64,000 bases of DNA from NCBI GenBank assembly GCA_030704615.1, contig CM060731.1, forward strand, positions 66,154,001 to 66,218,000, in the 5' to 3' direction. Shown piece after piece: positions 25,493-64,000 of this stretch (position 1 is the stretch's first letter; each line of letters begins with the position of its first letter). Under the pieces are notes generated by a model. It did not search any database and was not told the DNA's origin. It was given only the letters and a program-made list of their open reading frames with translations. Both the position numbers and the translations under genes were made by a program. The DNA is from Takakia lepidozioides. Its lineage: Eukaryota; Plantae; Bryophyta.

Positions 25493-25780
25493 ATTGAAGC
25501 TAACCTGGCTGACATCATCGTTGTGATGTCTTATTGACGTGTAGTTCGGGGCTCAGCTGGATATCATTGATTAGACTTTTGGAGTTTCTCAGATGCATTG
25601 GCGAGGTTGGATGAAGGTTCCACGTTCGTTCGCTGATGTCGAAGCCTTTCCAATGTACAAAATACTCAAGATGTTTACTCTTGATGCGAGAGTCTAAGAC
25701 TTCGTCGACTTCATATTCAATTTCCTGATTGACTTCAATCGGTAGAGGTGGTACATAAACTCGTCCGGGGATACTTGAGT

Positions 25781-26531
25781 TGTCGCGCACCTCACTTCGG
25801 TAAGTTCCCCTTCAAGTCATAGTTACTCGCTTTGATGCGCGCGCCTAATTTCCAACCTGGCCGCTGGGCCAACTTGGAGCTTCGGCTGCTCACCGGGGCA
25901 TAACGGTCCCCCTTTAATCTCCCAAAGAACCCTCCACCGATTTGGGCCCAGCGGGAATTCCCTTTGGTAGTTGGCAGTCCGGAACAGCTCCCCACTCTTT
26001 GGTCGCTTTCCGGCTCGCTCGCTTACTCACTAGTTTTTGGTCACCAACGGGCTTGCACCGTTCTCGGGGTTACTACTCCCTATATATACTTCTGTAGCTG
26101 TCCGCGGGGGTTTCACAAACAACCATGCCATTTTATGGCGAACCACCACGAAAACCCTCGACTCCCGGTGATGAGTCGCGGTGAGTCTTGGCCCACCCAC
26201 CACGGCCCCTATGGACCGTGATGAGTCCCAAGACTCCCCACGACTCCCACCACGAGGTCTCCGCCCCAAGGTGAGTCCTATGCCACCCCCACTAAGTCCC
26301 ACTAAGCTACCACCACCCCTTTGTGAAGCCACCCCCACCCCTTTGTGAAGCCACCCCCACCGCATCCCGGTGTGCGGGGCTCCACCTAGTGAGCACCTCC
26401 GCCTCCTTGAGTGCTTTGGGCACTCAAGGGTGCTTCAGCCCCCCGTACCTATCGCTGCCACTGCCCCCACCACAGGGGCAGCCCCTCATGTGTCCCGACC
26501 CCCCCTGCCCTCAAGGCAAAGGGCCGCGACA
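25781..26531 (+). mobile_element. solo LTR (copy 1), inserted in the chromovirus integrase
   Basis: Termini TGTCGCG…CGCGACA, 5-bp TSD TGAGT (25776-25780 / 26532-26536), internal TATA-like ccctatatatac. Confidence 0.92.
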
Positions 26532-37400: not shown

Positions 37401-37616
37401 CTGATCCTTGCATTTCTTCTCTAGATACTGCAGCATACTCAAGTCTTTTTCACGCAATCTTTCCACGATCATACTTGCAGGTGTGCCCAAATCCCACTTT
37501 ACATTTAGTCTACTGCTGAGCAATTCTTCCTCGAGACGTCCAGCCATCTCCACCAAAGTCCCCACTTGATTCCGCACCTTCTTCACTTCAGCTAAGTACT
37601 CGGATTCCACAGCCAT
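34407..37616 (-). CDS. intronless ankyrin-repeat + tandem CCCH zinc finger + RRM RNA-binding protein, ~1069 aa
   Basis: Single ORF, first ATG at 37616. About 4 ankyrin repeats (EGNTALHWA, LGATPVHTAA, TKETPLHYAV), two C-x8-C-x5-C-x3-H fingers (YKTVMC…FAH, FKTKLC…FAH), an RRM (RNP2 VFVGGL, RNP1 RGFGFVVF), and Ser/Pro-rich linkers and tail. Confidence 0.92.
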   Translation of the reverse strand: MAVESEYLAEVKKVRNQVGTLVEMAGRLEEELLSSRLNVKWDLGTPASMIVERLREKDLSMLQYLEKKCKDQLVPIAFRLARGLKMAPFVALLLVARSSVVNSFEKKADAVVNAVAKKIDTVVDAAVKKVELPRVSLVIRKVDAPDDFIGGTLVDLLLGMALAHSTSCCSSKPAEKPAKNNSYVREYGGDVWAGFGLYRKSSADADEDFGLDTKHSGSLDEWAGSTSYTEHLKDFSKWDESFSGLKSMEDSAELEEVTSKSRKPILLDDYGGARGNGVGSNCEIARKLLECLLLFGPRLCAHTQSLYLPPLLRAAQGNDETLVFLLLDAGAPVNDRDAEGNTALHWALRQATPMNKRTVNARVVTRLLDAGANVLTGNKLGATPVHTAAGHGHFEALSLILDKDAGGVNVMAATKETPLHYAVKNNHLRCTALLLKHGANRNVASLRNQKPLQLSPSLEMRALLMLDNKTIREQSWETLLASLALASPQSASVFCLAPLQPESKSQFSSLSEASSPGFMHPSSHFPSHPSTQPWLTSSTTISSQLGPSLLLQSPSLSPPLPSLSGSSQDGNPFEWLAVQTQFISGQEMGQVGGRKETVNLPQYKTVMCRFFASSEGCGFGNKCHFAHSRDELLSADRIDSLEMRTGADQGDGEGADQARRNFKTKLCTHLEKTGRCPHGSRCTFAHGLGELRGSFSASSSIRPEVKSDVGPFGSNSFVSTGSSDNSNDNIRARKVFVGGLPHFIQGDELWEFFDHEFGKVVDAVVICGTDADGKSCSRGFGFVVFEDPKYAEIAVRRRYLAFWGKKVEVKQATAHIDYNDEPSKLNSSRPSSVSCPVSSASSSSALGLPKEELQVLASHSMGVPQHAWSLPPLAVVSVGHPTENAVQPSMDGVQFLAEHTGSPQLDSFSTGQHLSETSNRLISQNSAPPLSTASGTRLSANQDHGTRFSNYRDFVPQSLDSGLLSGANPVSYFEPVIASSSVHPYHSLSLPPSITSSHPSSLTFNASSTSYSNGSSFDSLSPQPSKFSINHKSQSFFSNPVSMSSYQSYNDNQGANDEELSKLLALLQG

Positions 37617-39199: not shown

Positions 39200-42100
39200 T
39201 TGACAGAGAAGAGGGGGGTGTGGGGTGAGGGGAGTGACCGTCTGTTGCATGCTACAGGTGCAGTCTGCTCCTCTCCTCAAAATCTGAAGCCATGAGTGCT
39301 AGGGGTACAGCCAGCAAGCGAGGAAACAAGGGGGGATCATCGATTCGCCCAGGATCTGCACTTGCGATGAACAAGGGGAAGTCAAAATGGATCACTAAGA
39401 ACTACTCTACCTCCAATGGTATGGGCGATTCAATCTTGGGCAAAGGCCCAACCCCACCAATCATTGACCACTCTTCCACGGAAGATGAGGGGGTATGGGA
39501 GGACTCCATTCCACAAGATACCAATGAGCAGCCAGTGTTAGCACTTGACAAGGAAAAGCTCAAGGTGCGAGCAGAAAAACTCACTCAGAGAAGAATTATC
39601 CTCTACTTCCCTGGGAAGCTTAGAGCTAGGAAGTGGGATCCGCACGTGGATCGTGAAACACATTGGAGCGGAGGGAGGACTCGACCAGCACTTCTGCCTT
39701 TCCATGTGCAAAGGTTTCTACCTGGTTCTATTCTGCAACTCAACTGAAGCAGAATCGGCTCTCAAGTTCAACACACAAATGTCAGCAACAAAGGTTTTCA
39801 TTTTCCCCTGGACCCATGACTGGGGTCACAAACAGGGAGTGATCTGGAAACCGAGGGTTATTGCAATCCCTTTCCTGCCTGCCATATATCTCTCTTCTCT
39901 CCCTGAAATAGGGGCCAGCTTTGACACTTTCATTAGCTCTCTGAACGTGTTCGAGCCTATCCAAGATACCATCAAAAGCTTGGACACAGAAGCTGCTTGC
40001 ATTGACTTTACCCGAGACAATGGCGTGCCCAAGTTGGTTGTTCTGATGCCGGAAACTAAGCCAATAGGCTCGTCCATCAAGTTGCCAACGTTAGATGATT
40101 CATACATCGTGGTAGCTATCCGCGAGGAGCTCATCTCCACGATTTGCAGGCTTTGGTTGCAACGGTGAAGGTCATGTGCGATCCAACTGTCCTAAAATCA
40201 ACAGACACAACGCCTCCGACAACGCCAAGCACCCCTTTCCACAGACAGAAGTAGCTGGCTCCTCATACAAGATAGCTGCTCAAGCCATTCACGCTCCAGT
40301 AACCATGGAATTAGACGTGGAGGTCCCTCATCAGGGTCAGACTTCTAAAAAAAAGAAGAGAAACGGAGAGAAGCCCCGGGTCATGGATACACCCAAACCG
40401 CCCATATGATCTACATCCTGTCAGAGTGAAGGACGCTTGGGCATCTTTTCCTTTCTCTGAGGAGGAGCTGCAATTTTTGGATAGCACAAGTCTAGCAACT
40501 GCTTTCCTGGAATTGCACACTTTCACCAGAAAGCCTCTCAATGGATGGGCCCCCGGATCAACATATACGCGAGATAGGGCAGCTATTTGTGTAACTCATT
40601 TGGTTTACACCCAATCTGACGATTACACAAATTTTTGCTTGCCAGAGGACGGGGAGGGTTTCCGCTCTGCATGGGTTTCGGAGCCCCTGGCCAAGGATTT
40701 GGGGGTCGGAAGTGTGAAGGATATCACTCTCTTCCTAACCAGCCAGATCCTCAGGGAGTTCTTCCCCCATATATCTCTATCTCCATCTCACATTCATGAC
40801 ATAGGTATCATGGTAGAGAACAATGTTGCCCTTGTCAATTTGGCGGTTATACATGTGCTCCCAATCTTCCATGCTTCCGACTTGGGGCAAGCCTCGGACA
40901 AGCCTATCAATGGGGTATGGGTGGACAAATTTGGCTTGTCTTGTAGGGTCAACGACCCTAATACCTGGGCACGCAACTCCCTATTCATGGAAGAAGGTAT
41001 TCGAATGGTAGCAGAACTGGCAAGTTTGCAGAAGCTCCAAGGCTTGGCAATGCAGGCAATGCAGGAAGGCAGGAGTGTGGAGCCCATCAACAACAAGGAG
41101 TTGGTGATATACAACAACACAAACATGGTGCTCTCCTCCAATGGGGCACACAAGGACATCACCGAGGCGATGCAACCGGAGGAGACTGTAAACTCGCCAC
41201 CTGCGGTAAGCATGTTTCCTCATGCTTACGCTCCTCTTGTTTTCTTTGTTCCAGACAATACCAATCTAAAAAGAGGCTGGATGCTGGTCATGGAACACCA
41301 ACTCAGGGAAAACAAGGTCCTGCCAGGATGGAATGATGTCTCTTTTTCTCTTCTTTCTGATACCTCTGTTGGCCTTCTCTCCTCAATTCTATCCTGGAAT
41401 CTTACCTTGGCAGATCTGTCAATGTTCAAAGACACCAAGAACCAATTCATGGAATTACATTGCGTTAACAAAAATAAGAGGTCTAGGCAACTGTATTTGT
41501 GGAACATCCCGCTTACCCCCCCCCCCGGTTGGTTTTAAATGGATCTACTCGCTTCAGCCCCTTGATAAAGGGGACTCTCTCTGTCTAGCAGTCGGTCTAT
41601 TGGATGTTTCCCACCCGGTAGAAGGTGAGCTAAGATTCACATGGGCTAACAATAGAGAGCCTCCCAACCTCTCTCTTGCTCGGCTTGATAGGTTTTACTG
41701 CTCTGCTCATCTGTTGAATTGGTTTGTGAGAAAAGCTATTAATCCAATTCCTCCAGGGTTTGACCACTCTAATATCCAGCTAGATCTCCACACCCTGGGT
41801 CCAGAGTCAAGGCTAGGGGTTTTTTCAAACTAAACCCCACACTACTTAAAGACCCAGAGATTATTCTCTCGCTCCAAAGGGTTTGGTCCTCTGCTGACCT
41901 CCCCTTCTCCTCCCCTACCCTCCTTTTTCTCTCTAAGCTTCGGATTTTGAGAGGCACCTGTCCCGTAAGAAAGCTGAGGAATCTGCCAGAAGAGAGAAAG
42001 CCCTGACTAAATGTCTTCTTGTTTGCCAATCTCAACTGCAAGAGGGAAGGGATGACCCCCAAACCCTCATCTCTTACAGAACTACAAAGAGAAACCTCTC

Positions 42101-44154
42101 AATGTTGTTAAACTCAAGGGAGCAGTTCATTAGGATAAAGACTGGCGTCAACTGGTCACTAAAGGGAGAAAAAATGACAAAATACTTCTTTGCTAAAGCA
42201 GCCCAACGCCGTGCTTCTACTCTGATCCCCTCCCTACGTGATGCATCAGGTACTTCAACTGCTGTCCCGAAAAAGATGTCCAGCATTGTTGCTGACTTTT
42301 TCAAACAACTCTTCCAAAAGAGAGACCATACTCCCTTGGTGGAAGAGGCAAGAAATGCTCTCCTCAGAAACATTCCATGCTCTCTCTTTGCTGCTGACAA
42401 GATAAGGATGGCAGAACCTTTCACTATGGAAGAGCTTGGAAAGGCGACGGACGCCCTGGCATCCTTCAAAAGTCCAGGTCTAGATGGGCTGCCTGTTGAA
42501 TTGTTTAAAGTTTTGTGGCAAACCATAGGGGATGACTTTCTTGCCATGGCCAATGACATCCTCCTCAAACAAGCGATGCCCTCGCAGATTTCAGAGGGCC
42601 TTGTCACATTGATTTACAAGAAAGGAGAAAGGGAAAATGTGGCTAACTACCACCCCATAACCTTACTCAATTCTTCTTACAAAATCATTGCTAAGGCTTT
42701 AGCTTTGAGGATTCAACCTTTGCTCCCGAAAATTATCAGAAAGAAGCAAATTGGATTCCTCAAAGACCGTATGATATTGGACAACATTCTTTTGGCCCAT
42801 GAGGCATTGCACAGAGCCACCTTGAACAACCAACCACTTGCTTTCCTGATGCTTGACTTCGTGACAACATCGACCGTGCTCTTCAAGCCTTGCAAGTTTT
42901 TTGCCTAGGCTCGGGCTTGAAAATCAACTGGAGGAAGTCCATGTTTCTCCTCTCAGTTTTGAATAGTCAAGCTGCGACTCACTGTAATCCATGGGGGCAA
43001 GATATTGGGCTGCAATGGCTAGGGGCTGGGGAGTCACACACTCTGTTGGGCCACCAGATTGGACTTGACTTGTCCCAACAAAGCAGAATGCGAAAAGTGA
43101 TCTCTGGGCTGAAAAGATCTTTGGCACATTGGTGCTCCTCCATGCTATCCATTGCTGGAAGAGCACTGGTGGCAAACCAGGGTGCTTCTCGCATCTTGCT
43201 GGTTCTCTGCAGCTATATGGGATCCAGGAAAAATCATGGTAAAGGAGATTAGAGCACTCATTCGAAATTTCATATGGGGTGCATCCTCGCACTCCCAAGT
43301 TAGAAGGGCTCTGATTTCCTGGGAGCAGCTCTGTCAACCGAAAAAAAAAAAGGAGGACTAGGCCTTTTGGACCCAGCGACGCAAATAAAGGCCCTACTAG
43401 CCAAGTGGATTCCTAGAGCTATCAATCACCAACATAGCCCCTGGAGTAAGCTAAGCCAGCCATATTTAATGGGGGCAATACCCTCTTCTTCCCCCCTTTG
43501 GGCTCACTCCCTGCGTTGGATTGTGCAAGGGAAAAATGCTAATGTGCAGCTCGGATCCCGTCCTTGGCAATCAATCTGGGCAGCTTGGCAGTCCATAAAA
43601 GACAAGCTGATCCAAAGACCTCCGATAAGCTTCGCAGAAACATTCAGACAGCCCCTGTTTTGGAATTCCATCATGAACTCAGGGGTGTTGTCACTTCCCA
43701 AGTGGGGCTTCTGGGAATTTGCTGGTTTCACACATGTGGGGGCTGCTTGGGAGCAGAATGAGTTTTTGCCCGTAGCTACAACGACACAATTGGTGGGTAC
43801 TTGACGTGCCAGAGCTTGGCCATCCTTGTTGCAGGCTCTTCCGGACTACATGTCCCCTCTGCTCAGAACTAGAGAAGACTTGGGGTATCTGCCAGCCTGG
43901 ATGGCTTCATCAAACGGCAATGGTAATACAGCCCTGCTTGTGCTCTCCTTGCAGGACCACATTGCCTCGGGAATTGCGTTCTTGGCAGATTGTGAAGGAA
44001 GCTTGAGAATCACGGGCTCGCTGGATATTCACAAGCAACACCTATATCCCATTAGATTGTTGGATGGAAAAGGCAACCCCAACCCAAGCCCCCCGGCAGG
44101 ACAGGAAATGCAATGGGCCTTGCATTCGGACCTCACCTGGTTCCTGAACTACCC
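39200..44154 (+). mobile_element. degenerate L1/Tx1-like LINE retrotransposon
   Basis: ORF1 pieces (39292-40168, GFYLVLF…IFPW RRM-like; decayed CCHC knuckle IC…GHVRSNC), a 370-aa unknown ORF (40426-41538), APE C-terminus (FTWANNR…ARLDRFY…DH), and RT N-half (GEKMTKYFF, KSPGLDGLPVE, NYHPITLLNSSYKIIAK, LDF) joined directly to SGLKINWRKS, so the RT core is deleted. Ends at an LTR insertion. Confidence 0.92.
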
Positions 44155-45871: not shown

Positions 45872-46394
45872 TCATAAGTAACCATAATAGGTGCACCTGC
45901 TAAATTGCAATTTTAGTACCTTGGGTTGTAACTTAACTTGTAACCATTCTAGAAAATAAAGGGACTGCCTGCCAACGCGTCTAACGTCCAGCGAGGCCCT
46001 GGTATCAGGCTGGGCGTTATTAACATGCAAGTGGTGAACATTGATGGCACATGTCCTTTTGGAGTAGCAATTCCCAACAACCTCAAGAGTACTGTGGATC
46101 AAAAGATTGTACTCATAAGACGTTGTTTGCCGTAGCCTTGTGGCCATTGACCCCGCGCCCAGTTTGAGCGGGAACAAAAGGGACAGAACCTACCTCCGTC
46201 AGGGGCTGACGTTGGTAGTAAGACTTACCTCCATATAAAGAATTAATCCGGGTTTTCCAGATATCCTCTAGAAATCCCTTCACACAAGCATCAATCTGCT
46301 GTGTGTGATTTGCCCAAAAACTAGGCCTCAGGAGGGCCTGGGCTTTTGGCTCAGCCTCGAGACTTTCAAAGTTGGTAAACAGGGGTACAGGCAC
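45872..46394 (-). mobile_element. remnant of a second LINE family's ORF1-associated region
   Basis: GNCYSKRTCAINVHHL resembles GSTYTRDRAAICVTHL in the 40426-41538 LINE ORF; interrupted by the 130-bp element. Confidence 0.45.
46107..46236 (+). mobile_element. ~130-bp structured short interspersed element, copy 1
   Basis: Nearly identical to 48867-48998; same 5' start ttgtactcataag, (AT) tail, flanked by aaaga/aaaga. Confidence 0.75.
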
Positions 46395-47789: not shown

Positions 47790-50700
47790 TCAACCAAGGC
47801 CCATCAATAGAGAAGCTGCCAACGTCCCTGTGATGCCCACAGCTGCCACCCACCGCCGTGCTTTGAGACTCCAAGGGTTTTGCAACTCTCTGGCTCTTTT
47901 AACACAGCCATTGATGGAACGCAAGACACCATTCCACAGCTCCCTTTGGAGATGGGGCTTTTTGCTCCCCTCAAATGGTTGCTGCCTTGCCACAGTCATT
48001 GCTGTGGACCAGGGGCACCAAGGGCTGTAACAGATCCCACTTATCCCATTTGCACGCACCCGAAATCGGTATGTGTTGTCTGCAACCAGACCCTTCACTT
48101 CACACCTGCCACCAACCATTCTCATCCTCTGACAAGTTTCGTGCGAGGCTAATAGGAAGACTGATTTCAGGTCTCCACAAAGTGTATCTAATGGTGCTGC
48201 ATGGTTTTCAGATGAAAGGCATGCCTCATATACAACAAAAACCACAAGTTGCAATCACAGAACCTGCTAGGACTTACATATATTACTTAGTACTGAATAT
48301 TCTCTTTTGACAAATGCAAGAACTTACCGGGTATAGCACCCCTCGTACACTTGCGTACGTCTCTCTGCAGCACCGAGATCTTCCATCTCCACTGTGTATG
48401 AGACAGTCTCGGCAATACCGTCACCATGGCATGCTGATTCAGTGACTGCCTGGACAACATCATGCTCCATTGATGAATCCAGCCATTGAATGGTCAGAGA
48501 GGTCCCAGATGTGGAGACAAGCTTTGGGGTTTGAGGTGTGGGTGGAGGCAGAACAGGAAGTGTGACTGATGCACACTCACTCAATGCACTGGCCCCTAAG
48601 GCATTCAACGCCTGCCAACAACACCAAAAATTTTAGAGAGAGCAGGCAGAAAGAAGAAACATTACAATGTCCACATTGAGCCCTGAGGGGACAATTGTAC
48701 AAGCAGCATGCATATTAAAAAACTACAGATTTCGCCTCTGTGGCTTGGCTTCTCTTGGCTTTGCTGAGATGTTAGCTGAAGAGCTATTATTGTAAAGTTT
48801 CTTTGCTACTTAAATGTAATCACGAGACATTTGCCGTCTTTGCTACTTTTCAGGGAGAGAGAGAGATTGTACTCATAAGACGTTGTTTGCCGTAGCCTTG
48901 TGGCCATTGACCCTGCGCCCAGTTTGAGCGGGAACAAAAGGAACAGAACCTACCTCTGTCAGGGGCTGACGTTGGTAGTGTGACTTACCATCATATATAG
49001 GGAGAGAGAGAGAGAGAGAGAGAGAGAAGAAATTAACTTTTTAATGTCCATGGGTGACAAACAAGGTCCATGCCAAACCAAAAAGGTCCAAAAATAACCC
49101 AATCTATCCTTGGAGATTGACATGCCTCCTGCAGGTGGGCTGCCAAGCACTTCCGGTCCTCGAAACTGCCAAAGATGGGAAGTCTCTAAAGTGACAGAAG
49201 AGAGATCATTTATACAGCTGGGAATAGGTCCAGCATTGAGAAGAAAAGAAAACAAGAAACAATGGGGCGAGCTCCAACGACAAAACTGGTAACCACGGAA
49301 GATGATACATAGTGAGGTAAAATACCTGCACAGCAACATGGTAGCATGAGGCAGGTACAAGTTTTGTCGCCTTGTATGATGTTGCTCCTCCTTCATACAC
49401 CTGCCATCTCCCCTATCTTGATTAGTGATAGTCAATGTCACGAGTCCCCATACTCACCAGAAATATTTCTACAATTGGAACAGTATTCTCACTGGATCAG
49501 CTGTTGGTCTGTTTCTTGCAACTGACGGCAGCACTACTAGACAAGTCACTCACTTTTTGAAGCCGGCCTCCTTTGCCATCATCCATCATGAGCTTGAAGC
49601 TGTTGCACATTTTACATAAAACATGAAAATCCACCAATGCATCAGCCTGTATGTAAGCAGGTGTCTATGCACAGAAACAACTGACATATGTAACTTTCAG
49701 AAGGTCATTCTACATTCAATAGGATATAACTGTACCAGGCCATGCACACCAGATCATACACGAGCCAAGCCATCCTTTAGATACATGCTCTTGTATACGC
49801 TAGTTGCTATCATTCTGCGGTTTAGGCACTGAACTATGATGGTCACTGGAGTATGGAACCATTGTACCTTATGGAGTCAGGACAATGTTGCAAACAGGAT
49901 CCGGAGAAAACCAACCTGGTCACAGGCATGCCATTATCGTGGGTGGGAGCACTCCATCGGATGCGCATTCCAGTGGGAGTGATGGAGCCAAAAGTGGGGC
50001 GGGTGGGTGCCTCCGGTGCAAAAGCACAGGTTGATACCTCAATGCTTGGACTCGGGGGAGAAGCACCCATATCATTGTGGGCTACTAACCTAAAGCTGTA
50101 AGGTCTGCCAGGCAGCAGATCCAGCACCTTGTATCTGCAATTCCCGAAGATTCCCATTATCTTCAGCCTGTCTCTGTTTTCCTTTTACCAATCATAACAA
50201 GAGACTCTGGGTTTTGAAATCTTGACCTCGCCAACTACAGTGTGACAAAGTTGTGAATTGGATAATGTGTCGTCTGTCTATAGTTTCTTGCTTCTTTCTC
50301 ATAAGCTCTTTGAGCTTCCTGTGGACGTTATGAAGTACCATTTCAATTCATTTCCTGTGTTGCCCAGAGAGCCTCTCCTGAGTATTATTCATGTATAGAA
50401 TACAATTGCTCAACTATAGAGGGATGGGTTAACTGAGTCACATAGCACATCCTGATACATGGGAGTAATAGGGCCACAGAGAAGCATAAAACAAAGAACA
50501 AGCAAAAGGATGAGGAGTTAGGTGGTTTTACTGAAGATGAGGTCCATGGTAGATTTGATCCCATGTTGATGATGACAGACTGCTGCTGCTGCGCACTGCA
50601 GTATCCTGCCTGGTAGCTTTCTTGCGACTGGTTTTTCTTCCTTTGTTTGGACCGTTGCTTGTGTTATCAGTTTCCTTCAGAAGTATACAGTCAGTACTGG

Positions 50701-53700
50701 ACACCACCCTTGCCATCTGAAGGCTGAGATTGGAGACTGCTGAGCCATTGTCTTGCTCTGGAACCTACAAGGCAGAACAGGGATTGCTGAGGTACAATCC
50801 TTGTTCATATAGCAACCTCATTGGTATTCAATCTACTGCAAGTAGCTATATAGAGCTCTGCTGCACTCTGGGAATGTCTGAGAATCTACACCAAGTTTAA
50901 TAAAGAGAGATAGACAGATCAACAACAACCTCCCATGTAAGGGTCACTGAAAAGGGTGTTGCTTCCATATCTCTTGGGGGGTGTGGGGCACATGGAGCTG
51001 CAGCTGCAGTTGAGGCAACCATAAAATCGCTGAATGCACTTTGCCCAGCTGCATTCCTTGCCTGCCAATTCACAACCACTGGCCATCAGTGCTTTGACTC
51101 GTCTTGTAGGGATGTGTACTAGCTTCAAGTCTTTCCTGGTTATGCATCACCAGAGGATGTTATGCCAGCTTGCCCAGAGTGGCTGGTCTCCACATCGAAG
51201 GAAAGCTGAGAATGTAGAAGCAAAAGATCCCAGGTAACAATAATTGAAACCAGAACACAAAAATGACCAGAACCCGACAGCACATTTGACCAGCCAAACA
51301 CCTTGGTGCTAGCTGTGTGAACACACAGATACAAATGACTCCTCTACGATTGTTGTCATGCCAATCCTGCTAAGAGCTGGTAGTTGTTGAAAAACAAAGA
51401 CTAAGTTTCCATGGACAACCTGAACACGAAATGCATAGCTTGTAAAAGGCTGAAGTTTGCTGATGGTGTACGCTGTGCTTGGCCCATCATACACATCTCG
51501 CAAAGCAGGGTTACTGACGAGCCCATTTACAGTTACATCACTGCAGATTGTGTTCAAGCAGGTAGAGGCAACCTCACTCTTATGGAAACGGTCAAACTCG
51601 TCCTCACTGGTACCTGCACGGAACATATCTTAACTTATACTTTGACACAATAAACCACAATATTGACAATGTTTTACAAGCACTGGATTTTATCTATGAC
51701 TACGACATAAATGCCTGTCCAATCTCACGTTTCAGTGAACTTATCAGAAGCTTGCTAGACCACCATGACAGCTGCAGTCATGCTGCAAACAAAACCTACC
51801 AATATACTGCTAGGAAATCAACTATCGAGCAACAACCAAAAGTTGCATCACTAATCTAGAACAATAATGATCCAACCTTATCCAGATATGACGTGCAGCA
51901 GAGTCATCTATCTATCATTGATTCTGCACAATAGTCAACCCCTCCTTAGAAAATCCCAACAGGAAAACAAACAACCCTACCTGCTTCACTAGGTGGGGGT
52001 CTGTTTTTCTGTGAAGATTTCTCACTTTCCCAAGAGCTGCTGGTGTAGCTGGATGTAGAAGACATACTATGTGATGGGGAAGGCAGCTGTGTAGAATGGC
52101 TTAGGCGGGCACCATGGCCTCTCGAAGCTGCTGGACCCAGGACCTCCATATGCTTGCTGGGGTTTTCCCCTTCTTTAACATTCCCAGTACAGAAGCTGTG
52201 GTCACTAGAAGGAAGATGCTGGCCACCATATCCAAGAATTAGCATCTGTAGGTGATATGACATTATTGCTGCTCCATTGGCTTCTGGAGGACTCCACCTG
52301 CAACAAGAGTTGCACACACATTGGTAAGGCTGTGATTGTGGGTAGTTTGCCAAGAAAGATATTAGCATGCTGAAACTTGCGAGTCAGGAATGTATATCTG
52401 TACTGGTGAAGGACCCATATGGACCTTTTCATACCTCAAAGATATAATTGTGGTAGCTGGGTTACCAACAATGACTGGTGGCTCTGGAGATGATGGGTGG
52501 GTAGGCGGAGTCTTTAGTATGCTTGTACCTGCAACAAGAATTTCCCCCTGTTTCAGGTGACGACCCTCGGGATGGACACACTCACAACCAAAATGTGGGA
52601 TACCTGGACACCCTGCAGCAGAGCTAGATTTTCAAGCAAGCTACTGCTCATAAACAATTGCACCAGCAGGTACAATCAGGATTAGTTCTGACTTGGTGGA
52701 CAATTTCTCATCGTGGAAGAACTTGAGGTTGCCACAAAAGAGCACATGATGTGACAACTGTTAATTGAAATCAAAATACAGGACTTCATGGTTCGGCAAA
52801 TAATCACCACTCCAAGGGCTGACTCCGAGCTTGTTGAGTGCCTGAACTCGAAAGCCATAGCTGCCACCTGGATGCAGACCTCCCAGGGCAAAGTTGGATT
52901 CAATTCCACGGTACACACTCAAATAGCCCTTAGCGTCCCCTTGCCTTGTTCCAACGCTATTTGGCAAGTGTCCTTCGTCTCCAAATTCTTCCAAGACTTG
53001 CATCTGCAGAACAGGTGCAGCCCATGCACATGATTTCCACCCACAAACATTATATATCCAGACTGGATGAGAAACCTGTGCCATTAATACTTGCCAAATA
53101 CAGAGGCAACTGTGTCACCTACTTCAAAATTCTACTCATTTGTGCACATATATATACAAGGAAACCACTCACAATACAGAAGTGATCGGCACATGCAACT
53201 GCATGTTTGGAAATGTTGAAAGTACCTCAAGGCGGAAGGAAGTGACTTGGGATCCACCATCATGGGCAGGAGGGTGCCACCCCACAGTAAGGCTGCGGCT
53301 TGAACACTCCAGTGCTGTTGGATTTGATGGGGCCTCTGGTGGTCCAGGTGCTGTGCTGAAGAGTGCTGAAGACAGCCACATCATGTACAGGACAGTAAGT
53401 AATTCTCCACTTGAGCGTACTTCCTTCATAAACCAGACTACATATCCTCTCCACCTCTTCCAGCTTCTGGTCATCTCTCCGCTTCTCCAATACTAAGTAA
53501 CATACACCATTGAACATCTTCTGAGTACATTCTGTTTCTAAGCAAAGAGCCAACCGTACCTTCACTAGAAAAGCCACTTTTACCCATTAAATTAACAGCC
53601 TGCACACGCACTTGATACTGATGGCCTGCATATCCATTGAGAGACAGAAGGGAGTGAGGAACAAAAATGAACAATCAGCAGGTGGGGTATAAGGTAGAAG

Positions 53701-56700
53701 AGTAACTTTGACAAAGCTACTGTGCACACTCAAAAGCAAGAGAAAGAAACCAGAACTTCATGCATGCAGAACTGATCTAGAGTACATACAAAGAGCACAA
53801 TGAGAAGCGTATCAAACAAATGGCACCACATACCAGGAGAAAGGCCAGTGAGAGTGTGAGCCATAGCAGGTCCATAGTATATCAATGTCCAGGCTACCAT
53901 CACATGCCCTTCCCTTCGCAAGGATGACACAGAGCGCATCTCCACCTCATATCTGCCAGCTCTTAGTTCCAGTTTCACTTCTTGTCAGGAATGGCATTAG
54001 GCATATCCAGTACATCTTACGATGCTCCTTCTGAGAAGATGCATAGCTCTCATGAGTTTTGCTTCCCAAAACATGGTCTACAACAACAGCAGTCTCAGAT
54101 GCTTGATGGAAGCCAGGGCATAGTTCTCATGTCATGGGAGGTCCTGCGACTTGCAATAGAAACAGCTGCAAAGTGCACAGAAAATAACTAATTGCCAAAA
54201 ACCCTCCTGAAGTTTAAAGATAGCACTTTCTCCGTTGTTTGCAACCCCAGGTGAAGTTGCAATGACTTACGCTGTAATAGGGCTTCCACCATCACGTTCT
54301 GGAGGGCACCAGTTAACTAAAACATTTGTTGTGCTGCGCCCGGTGATGGTAGGTGTGGGAGGAGGATCTGGGGCTGAAAAACCGGTCAGAAGCTCCGCAG
54401 GCATGCTAAATGCACCCTTTCCTATATCATTGTGTGCCATTACTCTCACTCGGTACACCTGGCCACTTTTTAAGCCTTCCATAGTGCAGCTGGACACACA
54501 ATTGCTATGTTAGCAACATATCCTGACTACGAAGTCAGCTACAGTTACTATAACCGCACTGTTTCTCTATCCAGGTCCTTGTTGCATGTTCAAACACCTC
54601 TTTGTCAATGCTAAACCATCAACCAGTCTCATCTACGTTTACCAATTGTTGATGGGGGATAAATCGCTCTTTACCCTTCCTGAGATTCAACCAAGAAAGG
54701 AAAGGGGGAACAACAACATCATCGCCTGCAAGAAGAGCTGCAATGAGCCATAGCTCGAACATAGTCATACCTCGTATTTTCACCGCTGTACACGACCGTG
54801 AAAGGGCCCCCTTGAACTGCCAAGTTTACCGATGAAATTTAGTAATTCTCTTGACAGACATCTGGGCATGGAATATCACTAAAGGTGTCGTGACGATGAC
54901 ATAAGCAAACTATACAGTGTAGTGAGAACCAAACTTAAGAGCGGGAGGTAGAGAGAAGAGAAAAGGACGGTATTTTAAGAGATTGGCTGACAAGCAGAAG
55001 TATGAACAATTAAATTTCATGGAATAGATATAGACACAAAGACAGACGCACACAATGGGTTCGATGCCGAAAGAAACTTGCCATCATCACGTTCCAAAGT
55101 GTAGGCAGTGATCGGAGAGCCACAACAATGAGGCTCCTGCATCCCAAATCATTTCAGCCCACATGAGCCAAACTTCTGTGCCACAGACCATGTCAATATA
55201 TCACACACACACACAGAGATGTGCATGCAAGAGCCTAGTTAACTGTAAACTGGCATCTGAGAGTATAAAAATAAACGAGATCTATGATACTGAACACTCG
55301 CCATGCTGTGCATCTTTTCTGTTAGTCCCTTGTTTAAATTCCCATTACATATCCACAAACCTTTGGGGGCAACGATCATTAAGCAAGAGAGATCCAGGAG
55401 CAAGAAAAGCACAAAAACCAAAACAAAGTTGCTCCTCTGCTAAAACCTAACACTGTAACTTAATGAGGTAATTTTGGGTCATTGTATTGAGGGTTGAAAA
55501 CTCTACAACTTCACAGCTTTGGTCCTGAGGAGACTGCGCAGTCCCAATTTCTGCAAGAAGAATCCTTTACAGCTTGCCAGAGCCCATATGGCAATATCGA
55601 TGGCAAGGTATAACAAACAGCAATGCCCATACTCCCTAAATATCGCTATGCGGAGTGATCATTAGAAAGGATGCCACCTGCCAGTTGACAGTGATAGATG
55701 TGGATGATGCAAACATCAGAGTGGGAGGCAGAGGAGGTGCTGGTACAGATGCAGCCGTGGTGTACATCACTCCTGCACTATATTCACTTCGTCCAATCGG
55801 GTTCACCGCCTGCAACACAGACGAAACAAGACATACAAAGAAAACTTCCTTCAGGATGGATGGGTCCAATATCCAAATCTCTGAGGGTCAGATTGGCTGT
55901 CTCTGGAGCCAAACCATAAGAGCCTTGGGCCTCACATAGGAAGCCAAAGAAAGCACAAACATATGGTTGGCTCAACAATGAGGCAGTAAGTAAAATCACA
56001 ATAAGCATATCTGATCCACATAACCGAGAAGTGAATGACAAAGTGAACTCACCAACACACGGAAATGATAGGCAGTGCCTGGTAACAAACGGGTCACCTT
56101 CGCCCCTGCCTCTTTTCCATTATACACCCGTACAAATCCCTGCGGTTGCCCACAACAGTTGAAGGAGGTGTCTCTTAATAGCCTATATATACCATTGCTC
56201 TCAAACTACCACCGGTGGGAGAAGGATGTTGAGTCTACCAAGGAATGGATACAGAAGTAAGCATTTTTGCTGTTAGATTTTGGCGCGAGACAGGACCTAA
56301 GATGAAATCTACTTGCCATAAAACTTCAGAGTACCCAGATTCAGAAGTTTTTTGTTCACCGAAGCCACTTCAAAGGAAAAGAGAATACATTTGAGCTGGG
56401 GATGAAAGCCGTATCACCATCACCCTTGCCTGGAGGAGGCTTCATCTCCAGCCAGTACTCAGAGAGATGTACCCCTCCACACTCTGAAGGTGGGAACCAC
56501 TTAACCTGCACTCTCACGTGAAAAGAGTTAGAGTTTCAACCCAATTTCTACTCTGCCTTGAACCACACAGCTACTGTGAGATTGGTTGGTAAACCTGTTA
56601 GCATCAGCTTATGGAAGTTTTTACTATGCAGAAAAAGCAAGGATAGAATGATGCACTCTTCAACTATGCCCCTACCTTTGATTCTCGCAAGAGCTCTTTA

Positions 56701-59700
56701 GTTGTGCAATAGCAGCTAGTGGACCTCCTTAAAAAGCTGTATGACTGGGGTTCTATTATTTTTATGCTCTCTCTAAGGAATAACTTAGACCAAGCCCTTA
56801 GAAGACAAACGAATGAAGACACATTTACATGACATAGAGGGAGGACATGCCTTAAGAGATGTGCGGGCTCGATTCACCAATGTGGGTGCAGCTGGTGCGT
56901 TGGGGGCAGCAGGCTGTGTGGCAAACATGGAAGGCTTGGATGGACAAGGAGAGGCTGGTTGTACAAGTGGGGGAGAGATAACTGGTACCACTCTAATGCG
57001 GAAATAGTAAGCTGCTCCAGGCTTCAAATGCTCCACCTATACCAGACAGCCATCTCATTTGTAAGTTCAAAGCTCACTGACAATAGTGCTTACAATAGAG
57101 ATGAAATGCAGGGAGAGAAGGAAAGAGAGGGGGTCGAAAGCATAGCAGCTATGTTCATGAAAAATCAGAGAGAAATCACAATGAGGAAATGTCGTACTGC
57201 TAATTGTGATTGTTGGGTTAGGACCTAATGACCCTACATGCAGGTAGATCATTTTGCTCTGCCTGAATATTGATGAACCACTTGAGCATATCTAGGTCAG
57301 GTGCTCTTGCCAAAGAAGCAGCTGTGAAAAGCTCACCTTGTGAGTCCTCTCTGTGCCACAGTACACAGGCTCCCACTCCAGCTGCTCAGTGCTTTCACCT
57401 GATGGTGTTTCAGAAGAGCAGGTAGAAGGAGAGACATGCTCAGTCAAGAGCCCATCCCTTTTCTTGGAGCTTCCTGCCTCTGACCCCAACATTAGCTTCG
57501 CAGGCACTCCTACTTTACTGACAGCCATATCCAGGTAGTAAAGGACTTCGACCGGGTAGTCCACCCACTCTAAACTGATGCTTCCCTGATCACTGGATGA
57601 GAGCAGAGGGGCTGAAGGTTGAGGAATGTCTTGTACTTTCTTTTCCTCCACTGCATGTACCCCTTTCTCCTCACCTGCAACTGGCCTAGTCACTGGTGGC
57701 ATTGAATCTTTTGGACAAAGGTTTTCACTCTTGCTGGGGGAAGCTACAAGAACACTGGCAATGTATCCTTCCTGTTCTACATCGTCTTGTTGTTTGTCTT
57801 TTCTAGATCGGCTGAAAGCTTTAATGGTGCTTAAAGTCGCTGGTGTTGCAGTCATTTGTTGCATGGTTTCCCTTTCCATTGATGGAGAAGTGGGGACAAA
57901 AGGTTTCACACTGCTGTTATTGTCTCTGTGTTGGCTTGTATTGTCCTGACCACCCAAGGACATAGCCTTCACTGCAGGCAGTAAACCTTGTGTCCGAGGG
58001 TTTGAAATTGGCTGACTACCTCCATTTACTCCGTTGGCACTTCGACCTGGGAAGGGAGCCGCCAGAGAACTTAAAACACCATTTGTTCCAACTTCCCGAC
58101 TGCCTTTCAAACCTGTTCCGTTTGTCTGTTCCCTCCTCTCCCTGTGTCTCCACTCGGATTCTGATTTTGTCTCAGCCCCTGTTCTTTTCCCATCCCTGCT
58201 TTTGTCATTCTCACTGGCAGAATCCTTTGATCTTCTGCCATTCCACCAAGAACCTCCAACCCCTCGGCCTACACTATTCCCATCAGCTAATCCTGTCTTC
58301 ACAACGGGCTTTCCAGAGCCATGGAGACTGTCTCTTTTTGTGAGACTGTTCCTCTTTCTGTAAGCATCAGTACTGTTCTGAGAATCAACAATAGAGGTCC
58401 TTACTGTGCCAGCACCATTTCTTGAGGTCCATTTGTCAGTCCTGTTCTCTTTGTTAACCCTTTCTACTTCCTCAATGCCTGGAGCATACTTGTTGCTTGG
58501 CAGAAAACTGCCAAAGCAAATCGCCTTGTGACCGTCAAATTCACCTTCGCCGATCCCTCTGGCCAGGTTCTCTTCAATGGCATGAGCACTTTTCGGGCCC
58601 CTACCAGCACCATTTTCTTGTGCAGTGCTGGGTTCCCTTTGATGAGTACCACCATGGTGCCCTACTACTTCATAATTAGCATGCCCATTAGCATGAAATG
58701 CCCCATTTTCCTGCGAGACATGAGCCCCAGACAATTGCAATGAACTATTCTTTTCATCTGAACTATCAGACTTGCTTTGCGTACCAGGATTACAAACTTC
58801 CTGAGAATCTATTGGAGAACCATCAGCCACAACCTCAGCCACAACCTCAGTCATTCCCCTCTGACAATTCTCTTTTTCTGCCAAAGCTGTTGATACAGCT
58901 ACGCCTGTTGTTTCTGAATTGTCATGGTCTTCACCGGGATCACGTGACTCCACAGAAACACTGCAGCTCTCCCAGCTTGTCTCAAGCATATCGTGTGACT
59001 CAAAAGGCTTCTTGCTCACCTCCAACTGTCTACCAAGATCTTCACAAATGTCGTCAAAACTTCCAGTGCTACTGCCACTTAACTCATCACAACAGCCCTC
59101 AGATGATGCACCAGTGATTTCTGTTGATGTATTGTCACTGTCACACTCTTCTGTAGCTGTCTCAGATGACTCGCTCCTTGTCAACTGCTCGATGGATAGG
59201 CTTATCCTTCCTGTAGAAGTTGGTGTCTCACCACAGTAACCATCTTCTGCACATCTTCCAGACTCCGTTCCTCTGCTACTGTCAATACTAAACCGGTATG
59301 CATCCGTTTCCCTGCTGTCTCTTGTTGGTTTGTCATCACTACAATATCCTTCACATATTTGAAAAACATTATCTCGGCTGCTACCATTGCTCAAGTCCAA
59401 GCTTTCTGTGTGCACCTCCGTACCTTCCCTTCCATTCTCATTGCTTCTGAGAACTTCAGGTGATTCTGCAAGCCAATGAGGACCCCTTACCGCAAATGTG
59501 CAAATGTAAACAACAGAAACAACCAACAGAAAAATGCAAGACGGTGGCTTCCTTGCTTGTGCCGTATTTTGCACAAACTTGTTGAGGAGCAACACAGCCA
59601 CAGTAGTGAGGCAACTCCACACCGCCCTATAGCAATAAAGCACAAATTCCAAGTACATTGACTCATTCTAATGGCAATCTTGACCGGTTCTCTTTATGAT

Positions 59701-59922
59701 GCCAATTGCTTTTTCAATCCCAATCAAACACCCACGGTAAGTCCTTCCTTCATTATGTTGGGTGTGCTTACCACACGATGGTTGGCACCCTTTTCGTACA
59801 AACCCTGCAGTACACCCAGTGCTCTCCCAGACCTTCCACTCTTCTCCGGGCATGATCGATTCCACATCATTTCTTGGTGTCTCAGCAGAGTCAATACTCA
59901 TCTTACTGTCAGGAGTGGCCAT
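47790..59922 (-). CDS. FNDC3-like protein: long disordered N-terminus, nine fibronectin type III repeats, C-terminal TM anchor; ~1850 aa, 23 coding exons
   Basis: Hand-built exons (minus strand), all phases consistent, total 5553 nt: 59922-59772, 59465-57337, 57036-56851, 56505-56389, 56139-56053, 55809-55678, 55136-55082, 54816-54771, 54489-54271, 53952-53834, 53625-53560, 53365-53226, 53003-52808, 52528-52435, 52297-51981, 51613-51420, 51061-50930, 50764-50532, 50134-49916, 49599-49554, 49400-49326, 48611-48328, 48105-47790. Repeated P..P…W.PP..dGG.PI..Y…VY.G…L.PG..Y.FRV.A.N motifs; ends RRWVAAVGITGTLAASLLMGLG*. Confidence 0.9.
48867..48998 (+). mobile_element. ~130-bp structured short interspersed element, copy 2 (intronic)
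   Basis: Flanked by a 15-bp direct repeat agggagagagagaga (48852-48866 / 48999-49013) in a GA microsatellite. Confidence 0.78.
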
Positions 59923-62900
59923 GAGAGAGGGAGGTCAATCACAAGTTACAACCGGGTTGCATGTCACTTCTCTGAAGTTTGTTTCAGCTGCAGAACAAAA
60001 AACCCTAGGAGTCACTACATTTTTGACGTCTGTTTTACATCCAGGTGAAACACCTAAGCCACATTGCCACACAGATTTGAGATATCCGGTCCAACAACTT
60101 GTTCAGATCCGCACTGTTTTGAAGGAATGTAGTGGCCAAAGCACAAAACCTCAAGGATTATAGTCACTCAGCCAAAGATAAGAACGAAGCAGACTGCTTC
60201 GGTATCTTCTGTTATGTGGAATGCATTTCATACACGTGCAAGAGAAGAGATCCTCATCAGTCTTGAACTGGAGGCAAAAGCCTGTCAACAGAATGATATG
60301 GCATTCACAATAAACTTGGGTAAGAGAATAGGAAACTGCTGAAAGGAAGAAGCGGAGGCATTGGTTCAGGATTGTCAGGATGTTTCGCATGCATACTCTT
60401 CACAGCTAGTGACAATGTCTTCATTTCCTGGCCTCTCTTTAGCTCAACATGGTGGAAGAGAAGAAAATGAAAGGGAATGGAGATATCAAAACAGGATCTT
60501 CAAAGGCTTGATCTGTACATAATTAGCCCTTGGCATACTGCAACGTGCTTCTAAGACGATTTCAGAGTCCTAAGTCAAGACAGCAATCATATGATTAACT
60601 GATTACGCTCGTCTCCACACGTCTTCAGGTCTTCACAAGAGTCCAAGATTCATCAACAGGAGGAAGAGCAAGGAGGAAGAAAGATGGGGAGCAGCAAACA
60701 ACATTGGCGCAAGAAAGATGCAACATGCTGGAGGATCTCAATTGGAAGATCTAGACATCGAGGCTACATTCCATCGCCAGGTCAATTACGAAGAGCGAGA
60801 TCTACACAGGCTCCGATCGCAATCCAAAAACCGAGAAAGCAAAAAGGCTGTCCACTGCGATCAATACCTCATGAGAGGCTCGTCCGTTGGCACGCGCCTT
60901 CGGCTTCAGCGGCGCCCTAAATGAACCAGATCAGAGAATATCTCCGCACGTGTGCACAATGAAGAGAGAGGGAAAGAGAGCACTCCAATGCGACGAGGAC
61001 AAAAGATAGAGCCAAAACGGGTATTAGCCCCCGGCAATGTGAGCAGAAAAAGAAAAGCAAAGCTCACAACCAACTCATTCACGATTCTCCCGGATTGAAG
61101 AGAGGCACGTCACGTTGTTCTGGTCGGTGGAACCATCATCGAATCCGATCGAACACGAAGAAGCTACAGAAGTGCAGAATTGACAAAATTGGCTGCCACA
61201 GTCTTTCGAGAACACATCTGCAGCGTAGAGATGAATATGAGAAGATTACACGCATCGAGAATAAGTAAGCGACGGTACACAGAGCGCGCAGCGACGAACG
61301 CAAGCAATGTCATGCTCCCACCTCCCCCTCTCTCTCTCTCCTCTTGTACCTACTCTCTTGCTTTGCATCTCCGTTTCTATTTCACAGCACGACCAGGCCG
61401 CTTCGCATGGAACTGTGCGGACGTGGATGAACCGTCCTCATCCATCATCCACTCTACACGATTAACGATTCCACGTTTTGAATAGAATATTCTAAGTATA
61501 TTCTATAACATTCTGTTTCGCTTGTGATGATATTGTCTAGCTAATCCTTGTCATGTGAGATATTCTATTCATGATTCCAAATATAGAAAGCCGCGACTTA
61601 AAAGTCACATAAAATTACCAGCTGACCGGACTGTACCTGGATGATTCTGGAAGCCAGCTAACAAGTTATCGGTGGGCCCAGAATCCCAACATGCTAACTT
61701 ACCACATGGATATTTGTAATGTAAGCATTCATGGTTCCTTGCATATATCGTCACAGCGCCGCGGGCCAGCCAAACGATATGGGATATGTATTTCTGATGG
61801 TGCATATTACAGTAGTTGCCCGTCATATTCCCCCTCATCGAACAGGATCCTGTCGGCTGAGATAGTATTAAGCCTGTAGGCTTGCCTTGTCTTAGTTATC
61901 CCTTCCCGAGGTCTAAATAGCACTGACGCCCACGCGGAGCATTGACGAATTTACGAATTGATCTGCAAGCCCTAAATAAGCATCCATCAGGCGGATGGAT
62001 GGTGGCATCGGTATGGATGTGAACGGATCAATGATGACCGGGCCCTAACGGGCGACCCGGCCCCGTGACCGCGCGGTTGTAACGCAGTCGCCCGCGTGCG
62101 CTGCGAGGCTGGCAGGGCCGGCCTTTACAGCTGTGTGAGCAGTGTGCGGGCGGCTTGATGAGAGACAAGCTGCTTCCATGGTGGTGTGTTAGGGGGGCAT
62201 TCACGCTTCACGAGGGATCAATACAGAGCAACTTGCTCCTTCACGTGGATTTCTTGGTTGTTCTGATCATGGATTCATGAGAGTAGTGTGCTCAATAACA
62301 ACAGAAGGCATGTGCAGAATTTCACTCATCAGAGACTGGAGTGAAGGTGATTGATAGAGAGGGCCGTGAGGACAGTGTGTATTAATCAAAGGAGGCAGAA
62401 GGGGGATAGGGGGGCGGTGATCAGGGCGCCGATCAGGGGAGATGTAAACGTGGGCACTAACGTAGGAAACTTTGTAAGGTCCAGCGGGGGCCCCACTGAA
62501 GGAGAAATGGAGATTTGAGATAGGTGGGACCCAGGGAGCGAGAGAGACAGACAGCAACGAGGAATTCATTTGCCCGGCACGCAGCGACCGGACCTGAAAG
62601 CACCGGGGCAGATGCTGTCCGTGTGAGAGCGGTAAATCGCTGGCAAGGCTTGAGTCAGGGTTTTGTCAACGTTTTGCGGCATCCTCAGCATCTCAGACAT
62701 TTAGACATGGGAGCATCTAAGATGCGTAGGAGGACGGTGGACTAAATTCCGGGATTTCCTCACAATCAGAAATGTTTCACACTCTTTATCTTGTCTACAG
62801 TTGAAGGTGTTATTCATCGTTTGCCCCAAAAACATAGGTCCAAACATGGGGCTTTGATTTGTTATTTGCAGCTTTGCAATCCAATTGACACCATCGAATA

Positions 62901-63669: not shown

Positions 63670-64000
63670 CTAAAAGTCCATGCAAGCCGCATTTGTGTCC
63701 TTCAATAGCACAACACAATCGTCTACAGAATCAAGATGGTACAAAACTGGGATGAGGGCGACACAGCCAAAAAGCACTGGGATGGGACCAAACACCCAAA
63801 GAAGCAATGGGCAAGCCATATAGAAACCCCGTGTACCCATAGTAAAGAAATTGCACCCTGCGGCCAGGACGTTGGCGACAGAGTCAGGTGTATTTCCGGC
63901 AGGGACGTTGATGAGAAAACAGACATCATTTATGTGATGCACCGATTGCATATAGCACAAGAAAGAGAACATAAAAAAGGATAGTAGTGACATGTACTTC
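63670..64000 (-). CDS. DUF599 family membrane protein, 3' end (runs off the window)
   Basis: KYMSLLSFFMFSFLCYMQSV…FLINVP…GCNFFTMGTRGFYMACPLLLWVFGPIPV…LYHLD, the characteristic plant DUF599 C-terminus. Confidence 0.88.
   Translation of the reverse strand, partial: KYMSLLSFFMFSFLCYMQSVHHINDVCFLINVPAGNTPDSVANVLAAGCNFFTMGTRGFYMACPLLLWVFGPIPVLFGCVALIPVLYHLDSVDDCVVLLKDTNAACMDF

Follow-up and report, generated by a model that had tools for sequence, protein, structure and literature searches.

Animal FNDC3 proteins and a plant gene of similar layout

The closest described systems are the animal FNDC3 proteins. FNDC3A, FNDC3B and Drosophila Miles to go (mtgo) have a disordered N-terminus, nine fibronectin type III (FN3) domains and one C-terminal helix, and carry no signal peptide (PMC12907209, PMC12828876). 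The N-terminus is proline-rich with a conserved PPGY(H) motif (PMC12907209), and the molecular job of these proteins is poorly defined (PMC12828876). FNDC3A and FNDC3B recruit the mRNA-tailing enzyme (poly(A) polymerase) TENT5C to the endoplasmic reticulum (ER), and C. elegans is said to have no obvious FNDC3 orthologue (PMC9668313). Here we describe a gene of the moss Takakia lepidozioides whose product likewise has a disordered N-terminus, an FN3 array and one C-terminal helix, and no signal peptide. It lies on the minus strand, at 59922 to 47790 of a 64,000-nucleotide stretch (contig CM060731.1, positions 66,154,001 to 66,218,000; hereafter the window, whose numbering we use). The FN3-type fold is also shared by the plant VIN3/VIL proteins and purple acid phosphatases, in which a single FN3-like domain accompanies PHD or enzyme domains and which have neither a tandem array nor a tail anchor. 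We found no publication that describes an FNDC3-like or multi-FN3 tail-anchored protein from a plant, while automated annotation may label relatives 'FNDC3-like'.

Gene structure and expression

The gene model consists of 23 coding exons, all in phase, which splice to 5553 nucleotides (nt) and encode 1850 amino acids (aa) ending in a single stop. Every acceptor is AG, and the donors are 20 GT and two GC (introns 3 and 7). The joined product was used for frame, length, composition and hydropathy; all comparisons, local ones included, were made exon by exon.

Contigs from a probable RNA run (X5, from a different sample with alleles of its own) have introns 1, 2, 3, 4, 6, 7 and 8 spliced as modelled and exon 9 joined directly to exon 10. 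This comparison covers the 5' 6 kb of the gene, with a contig break at intron 5; it includes the start region and both GC donors, and bears out eight of the first nine junctions. A second probable RNA run (X6) confirms the intron 2 junction, and contigs of two DNA runs compared at the locus show no exon joints. A single RNA contig of 3280 nt extends 2896 nt past exon 9, a length consistent with exons 10-23 (2431 nt) followed by some 465 nt of 3' untranslated region (UTR), and AATAAA/ATTAAA signals lie 455-485 nt 3' of the stop codon. The 3' half of the model is supported by the length of this one contig and by the orthologues described below. The locus is a real, expressed, intact single gene.

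The RNA contigs also add a non-coding 5' exon to the earlier 23-exon model: the loose end of one contig at 59989 matches the sequence from 60870 onward. We place the start codon at 59922 because an in-frame stop lies just upstream within the same exon. The 5' end of the gene comprises the following parts.

60868-60970, minus strand: non-coding exon (5' end approximate), spliced to 59987
59772-59922, minus strand: coding exon 1, ATG at 59922; the exon also contains an in-frame stop about 15 nt upstream of the ATG
57337-59465, minus strand: exon 2, encoding the low-complexity N-terminus rich in Ser, Glu and Gly (aa 51-662) and the first half of FN3 repeat 1

The 5' UTR (60868-60970 and 59923-59987) is interrupted by an 880-nt intron. 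A Met-Ser-stop upstream open reading frame spans this intron and is created only by splicing, and another of seven codons stands immediately before the start codon.

Other explanations of the locus were considered and rejected. A pseudogene or mis-spliced model was dropped because of the RNA joints and the conserved orthologues, and several separate genes because of the exon 2-3 joint, which falls inside repeat 1, and the long RNA contigs. Animal contamination was rejected on the neighbouring genes, which include the plant-specific TOM20. A secreted or receptor-type FN3 protein was rejected on the missing signal peptide and the position of the anchor at the extreme C-terminus.

Domain composition and predicted topology

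About 660 low-complexity residues stand before the FN3 array. The N-terminal 680 aa contain 14% Ser, 10% Gly, 10% Glu and 4.9% Pro, and disorder was judged from this composition; a Pfam scan of the exon open reading frames (ORFs) assigns no family to the region. The same scan finds fn3 directly on five exon ORFs, namely exon 9 (E 4e-9), exon 19 (4e-10), exon 12 (3e-5), exon 13 (2e-4) and exon 16 (6e-4), together with a weak Fn3-like match on exon 23 and weak Pur_ac_phosph_N cross-matches. Counted from W/Y landmarks and exon-wise profile scores, the array comprises nine tandem FN3 repeats and no other folded domain, with long loop insertions in repeats 1, 6 and 7.

56913-57630, minus strand: FN3 repeat 1 (aa ~663-802), exons 2-3, long loop insertion
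55756-56912, minus strand: FN3 repeat 2, exons 3-6, FNDC3-repeat-2 signature RARTSLKVKW, GC donor in intron 3
54378-55755, minus strand: FN3 repeat 3, exons 6-9, GC donor in intron 7, also GC in the orthologue L016
53352-54377, minus strand: FN3 repeat 4, exons 9-12
52509-53351, minus strand: FN3 repeat 5, exons 12-14
51002-52508, minus strand: FN3 repeat 6, exons 14-17, with a long loop insertion rich in Ser in exon 15, 44% conserved in L016
50023-51001, minus strand: FN3 repeat 7, exons 17-19, basic loop insertion
48555-50022, minus strand: FN3 repeat 8, exons 19-22
47985-48554, minus strand: FN3 repeat 9, exons 22-23, missing from the lineage L004/L007
47883-47957, minus strand: predicted amphipathic helix preceding the anchor, with a hydrophobic moment of 1.2-1.9 across the seven plant copies
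47850-47876, minus strand: juxtamembrane motif P-W-x-L-x-(T/A)-R-(R/W)-W, with P, W, L, R and W invariant in 7/7 plant sequences
47793-47849, minus strand: C-terminal hydrophobic helix, putative tail anchor (aa 1832-1850), stop at 47790-47792

The only hydrophobic 19-residue segment is aa 1832-1850 (Kyte-Doolittle hydropathy, KD, 1.76; next best unrelated window 1.2). It is preceded by basic residues and followed by none, and the protein has no signal peptide. In the AlphaFold model of the exon-23 alignment, one helix is followed by a break at the Pro-Trp motif and then by a terminal helix with a predicted local distance difference test (pLDDT) value of 76-78, the remainder being of low confidence. 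Because there is no signal peptide and only one C-terminal helix, tail-anchor rules predict post-translational insertion, with the whole body of the protein in the cytosol.

The initial annotation had proposed an intact single gene of 23 in-phase exons and about 1850 aa, coding for a Ser/Glu/Gly-rich disordered N-terminus and a terminal hydrophobic helix that follows basic residues, with no signal peptide. The spliced translation, the RNA junctions and long RNA contigs, the residue composition and the hydropathy agree with each of these points. The cytosol-facing, tail-anchored topology it suggested is likewise what the tail helix and the missing signal peptide would predict.

Orthologues in other plant lineages

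A search of 1.84 billion representatives with exon 22 returned 287 matches, of which the best 150 were examined. These are mostly bacterial FN3 arrays, but include two single-stretch matches at 45% identity, and a profile of exon 19 added four further fragments. The contigs of these matches carry the orthologous gene in three other plant lineages, represented by the loci L001 (exons 16-23), the group L003/L016/L022 (exons 2-23) and L004/L007; exon ends, phases and the GC donor of intron 7 are conserved where checked in L016. All orthologue tails have the amphipathic helix, the P-W-x-L-x-(T/A)-R-(R/W)-W motif and a modestly hydrophobic helix followed by zero or one residue. Conservation of the gene in several plant lineages, which had been predicted from the moss sequence, thus extends to the same exons and tail.

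Two orthologues, L004:1898-2212 and L007:2053-2373, lack FN3 repeat 9, a strand A stub leading directly into the tail, and also lack intron 20; the repeat number of nine is therefore not fixed. Downstream of the orthologue, L003:1295-2920 and L008:1309-2960 hold a tandem duplicate of part of exon 22 plus exon 23, tail anchor included.

Other searches returned no further plant relatives. In a word search, region 675-790 of the exon-2 ORF matched none of the proteins of 57-182 aa that were covered, a length filter that leaves out full-length kin, and cluster representatives hide members. In the ESM Atlas, exon 23 had no match of at least 0.9 and insect FNDC3 retrieved animal clusters only, and a scan of JGI metagenomes gave two bacterial loci. 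The few lineages found, set against abundant public angiosperm sequence, are weak evidence that the gene is absent from flowering plants. Among the exon-22 matches is also an Asgard protein of 1632 aa with FN3 domains and a C-terminal hydrophobic helix (Candidatus Lokiarchaeum ossiferum, UYP44744.1; our P0080). It is probably an unrelated surface protein, because its exon-summed similarity is low and its N-terminus hydrophobic.

Similarity of the FN3 array to FNDC3

For comparison we used named insect FNDC3 proteins, with 149 other arrays, bacterial, as controls. When the best 150 of the 287 matches are ranked by exon-summed score, two insect FNDC3 fragments come out on top. For each of the 21 exons tested, the profile has a higher median score on FNDC3 than on the other arrays, by a narrow margin in several cases; for exon 6 the medians are 29.6 and 11.4. 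The decapeptide RARTSLKVKW fits a pattern exclusive to FNDC3 repeat 2 (43/57 proteins, 0/149 other arrays), in line with the likeness to FNDC3 motifs proposed in the initial annotation. Altogether four signatures, each confined to one FNDC3 repeat (2, 4, 5 and 8) and absent from the other arrays, lie in plant repeats 2, 4, 6 and 9. This mapping is collinear and suggests that the plant array contains an additional repeat and has no match to FNDC3 repeat 9. The inter-repeat junctions 1-2 and 2-3 land on the same junctions of FNDC3 in 34/57 and 52/57 proteins, and junction 6-7 is partly in register; the overall test of junction register gives P of about 0.03. In a quick tree of 70 columns the plant 6-7 junction pairs with that of FNDC3 (Shimodaira-Hasegawa-like approximate likelihood ratio test, SH-aLRT, 91), while plant and FNDC3 junctions are otherwise intermixed and largely unresolved.

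The two ends of the protein are different. The plant N-terminus has no PPGY/H, no PPxY and no match to FNDC3 N-terminal profiles, and exon 23 does not match the FNDC3 tail profile with its (S/T)-D-Q motif and strongly hydrophobic helix. The plant tail is unrelated and less hydrophobic, with an amphipathic helix and the sequence PW-x-L-x-T-R-R-W. The plant array further differs from FNDC3 in its long insertions in repeats 1, 6 and 7, its shifted register and its eight or nine repeats. Two likenesses to FNDC3 repeat 2 did not survive: DDGKGG, named in the initial annotation, sits in plant repeat 8 but in repeat 2 of FNDC3, and a GKGDG likeness was dropped, the sequence not being kept in L022.

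We conclude that the plant array and animal FNDC3 probably have a common ancestry, with the plant array remodelled by gain and loss of repeats and having different ends. Of the FNDC3 identity and architecture put forward in the initial annotation, the layout and the FNDC3-like repeats stand, whereas the equation of nine repeats with nine does not (the register is broken and L004/L007 lack repeat 9). Because two defining features of FNDC3, its N-terminal and tail motifs, are missing, we do not file the gene as a member of FNDC3.

Other FN3 arrays have the same fold, and the titin A-band, LAR-type receptor phosphatases, contactins and DSCAM are the top PDB matches for single exons. They rank high because many repeats are summed; the plant protein has no Ig, kinase or phosphatase domain and no signal peptide, and its anchor is at the extreme C-terminus.

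A conserved FGSF motif in the N-terminus

Although the N-termini of the window gene and of the L022-L025 orthologue cannot be aligned (608 against 171 residues, the latter acidic; local score 41, shuffle mean 48), they have one sequence in common.

58504-58521, minus strand: ICFGSF (aa 366-371), candidate motif for binding the NTF2-like domain of G3BP

ICFGSF is an exact 6-mer in both N-termini; any common 6-mer arose in 18 of 2000 shuffles, and by chance one would expect 0.001 and 0.0003 occurrences of the motif in the two. Four of its six codons differ between the two lineages, all synonymously. In both it has the core F-G-(D/E/S)-F after hydrophobic-x. Its distance from the likely start in L022 is about 9-14 residues, a placement like that in USP10 and UBP24.

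The F-G-(D/E/S)-F core binds the NTF2-like domain of G3BP; in USP10 the FGDF occupies residues 10-13, and the Arabidopsis counterpart of USP10 has Ser at the third motif position (PMC4450067). The FGSF of Arabidopsis UBP24 is N-terminal, and this protein interacts in planta with 7/7 AtG3BPs tested (PMC7838295); the wider class of G3BP-ligand motifs is hydrophobic-x-F-G (PMC11962251). The plant protein thus resembles USP10, UBP24 and alphavirus nsP3 in its hydrophobic-x-F-G-S-F sequence, in the disordered setting and, in one lineage, in its position near the N-terminus (PMC4450067, PMC7838295, PMC11962251). Those ligands are soluble enzymes or viral proteins, whereas here the motif would sit on a membrane-anchored FN3 rod. 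By this similarity of motifs, ICFGSF would most likely bind the groove of the G3BP NTF2-like domain in the manner of UBP24 FGSF and USP10 FGDF.

A proposed role and its alternatives

We favour, at a probability of roughly 45%, the reading that the gene is an expressed, conserved family of non-seed land plants whose product is a tail-anchored scaffold docking G3BP and messenger ribonucleoproteins (mRNPs) at an organelle. The C-terminal helix would be inserted after translation and leave the body in the cytosol, the amphipathic helix and Trp/Arg motif would seat the protein on the membrane surface, and the eight or nine FN3 repeats could form an extended rod and docking surface. ICFGSF in the disordered N-terminal arm might then bind the NTF2-like domain of G3BP and so keep G3BP and mRNPs at the organelle surface, most likely that of the ER, with the mitochondrial or plastid outer membrane also possible, where local translation or stress-granule seeding may be tuned. 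An RNA-related role at a membrane has a precedent, because FNDC3A/B recruit TENT5C to the ER (PMC9668313).

A number of observations weigh against this reading. Most exon best matches to FNDC3 are out of register, the FNDC3 signatures were devised after both sides had been inspected, with bacterial arrays as their only controls, and titin and LAR-type phosphatases score level with single FNDC3A domains in the PDB. The anchor is weakly hydrophobic (KD 1.6-2.3 in plants, 2.6-3.0 in FNDC3) and does not single out the ER. ICFGSF is seen in two lineages only, the other loci being without the 5' part, and was recognised after the fact. It is followed by LPSNK or PASLL and lacks the two downstream acidic residues proposed in PMC4450067. 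Insect FNDC3 has no N-terminal counterpart: FG[SD]F occurs in 2/122 proteins, both times far from the N-terminus.

The most serious rival, which we consider unlikely, is that the architecture is convergent: the plant FN3 array would have been enlarged by its own tandem duplications and have gained its own tail anchor, so that the protein, though a cytosolic scaffold on a membrane, would be no homologue of FNDC3 and 'nine plus tail' a coincidence. Intron positions favour this. Ten of the 21 array introns fall into four classes, each with one repeat position and phase in common (repeats 2/6/8, 3/7, 3/7/9 and 4/8, that is introns 5/16/21, 6/17, 8/18/22 and 9/19 of the gene), with P of about 2e-5, or 0.005 under a harsh 90-site null, and from this recurrence we conclude that the array was enlarged through duplication of a two-repeat unit that carried introns. 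No periodicity of two repeats is seen in insect FNDC3. The beetle FNDC3 gene has none of the four recurrent intron classes; of its three array introns, one agrees with plant intron 20 both in position and in phase, though it lies in a different repeat. Convergence would also fit the dissimilar ends, the broken register and a repeat number that varies between plants. It does not readily account for the repeat-specific FNDC3 signatures in preserved order or for the agreement of junctions 1-2 and 2-3, and the plant junction pieces form no plant-only clade in the quick tree, unresolved as this is. The duplications themselves could predate the plant-animal split, and the beetle gene does not decide their timing because it is intron-poor.

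Far less probable is that the gene is simply an FNDC3 orthologue that acts in spermatogenesis or the flagellar apparatus and was retained only where plants have motile sperm. The overall layout is alike and few plant lineages were found despite abundant angiosperm data. In addition, L004 has a convergent neighbour (L004:3561-4463, minus strand) with sperm-tail PG-rich repeats of the SHIPPO/ODF3 type (Pfam E 3e-15), so its host has flagellar genes; a neighbour at one locus is, however, not co-distribution. The transcript assembles in two probable RNA runs of unstated tissue, and the defining N-terminal motif is absent. Moreover, FNDC3 is not known as a ciliary protein: as cited in PMC4498915, the role of mouse Fndc3a in the testis is in cell adhesion, that of spermatids to Sertoli cells (Obholz 2006). 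Neither flagella nor plants offer a counterpart of such adhesion.

The least probable account is that an early ancestor of land plants or streptophytes received an FNDC3-type gene by an old horizontal transfer, from an animal or a protist, and that this gene later acquired plant introns and new ends: the distribution is patchy, the best eukaryotic matches found are animal FNDC3 and no algal or protist intermediate stands among the best 150 of 287 matches, but the searches have no power for distant eukaryotes (bacterial arrays swamp the list, and a length filter applies), identity to FNDC3 is only at the level of the FN3 family, and the 22 introns are conserved across plant lineages.

Other sequences in the window

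The remainder of the window contains the following genes and fragments.

2996-3313, plus strand: exon sequence of plant TOM20
8437-9075, plus strand: exon sequence of a glutathione S-transferase gene
25518-25811, minus strand: chromodomain fragment, probably from a retrotransposon
34407-37616, minus strand: intronless gene with ankyrin, CCCH zinc finger and RRM domains (Pfam), an RNA-binding protein
41937-42905, plus strand: decayed reverse-transcriptase element
63673-63999, minus strand: exon sequence of a DUF599 gene

A repeat of 137 nt, 94% identical between copies, occurs at 48864-49000, in intron 21 beside a (GA)n tract, and at 46104-46240, 1.5 kb downstream of the gene; it is probably a small mobile element.

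Implications

FNDC3 is treated as an animal protein. A bolder proposal, which we hold doubtful, is that an FN3-rod, tail-anchored mRNP scaffold already existed in the common ancestor of plants and animals and was lost in flowering plants. In bryophytes it would serve as a membrane receptor for G3BP, a tether between stress granules and an organelle, where animals recruit TENT5 with the same rod. To our knowledge, TENT5, the known partner family of FNDC3, is not present in land plants. If the ancestral-scaffold reading is true, FNDC3 is no animal invention. A conserved plant counterpart in tractable bryophytes would either date the architecture to early eukaryotes or show a clear case of convergence. 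We know of no plant receptor that attaches stress granules or G3BP mRNPs to organelle membranes, and the conserved FGSF would offer a one-residue handle on how such attachment is achieved.

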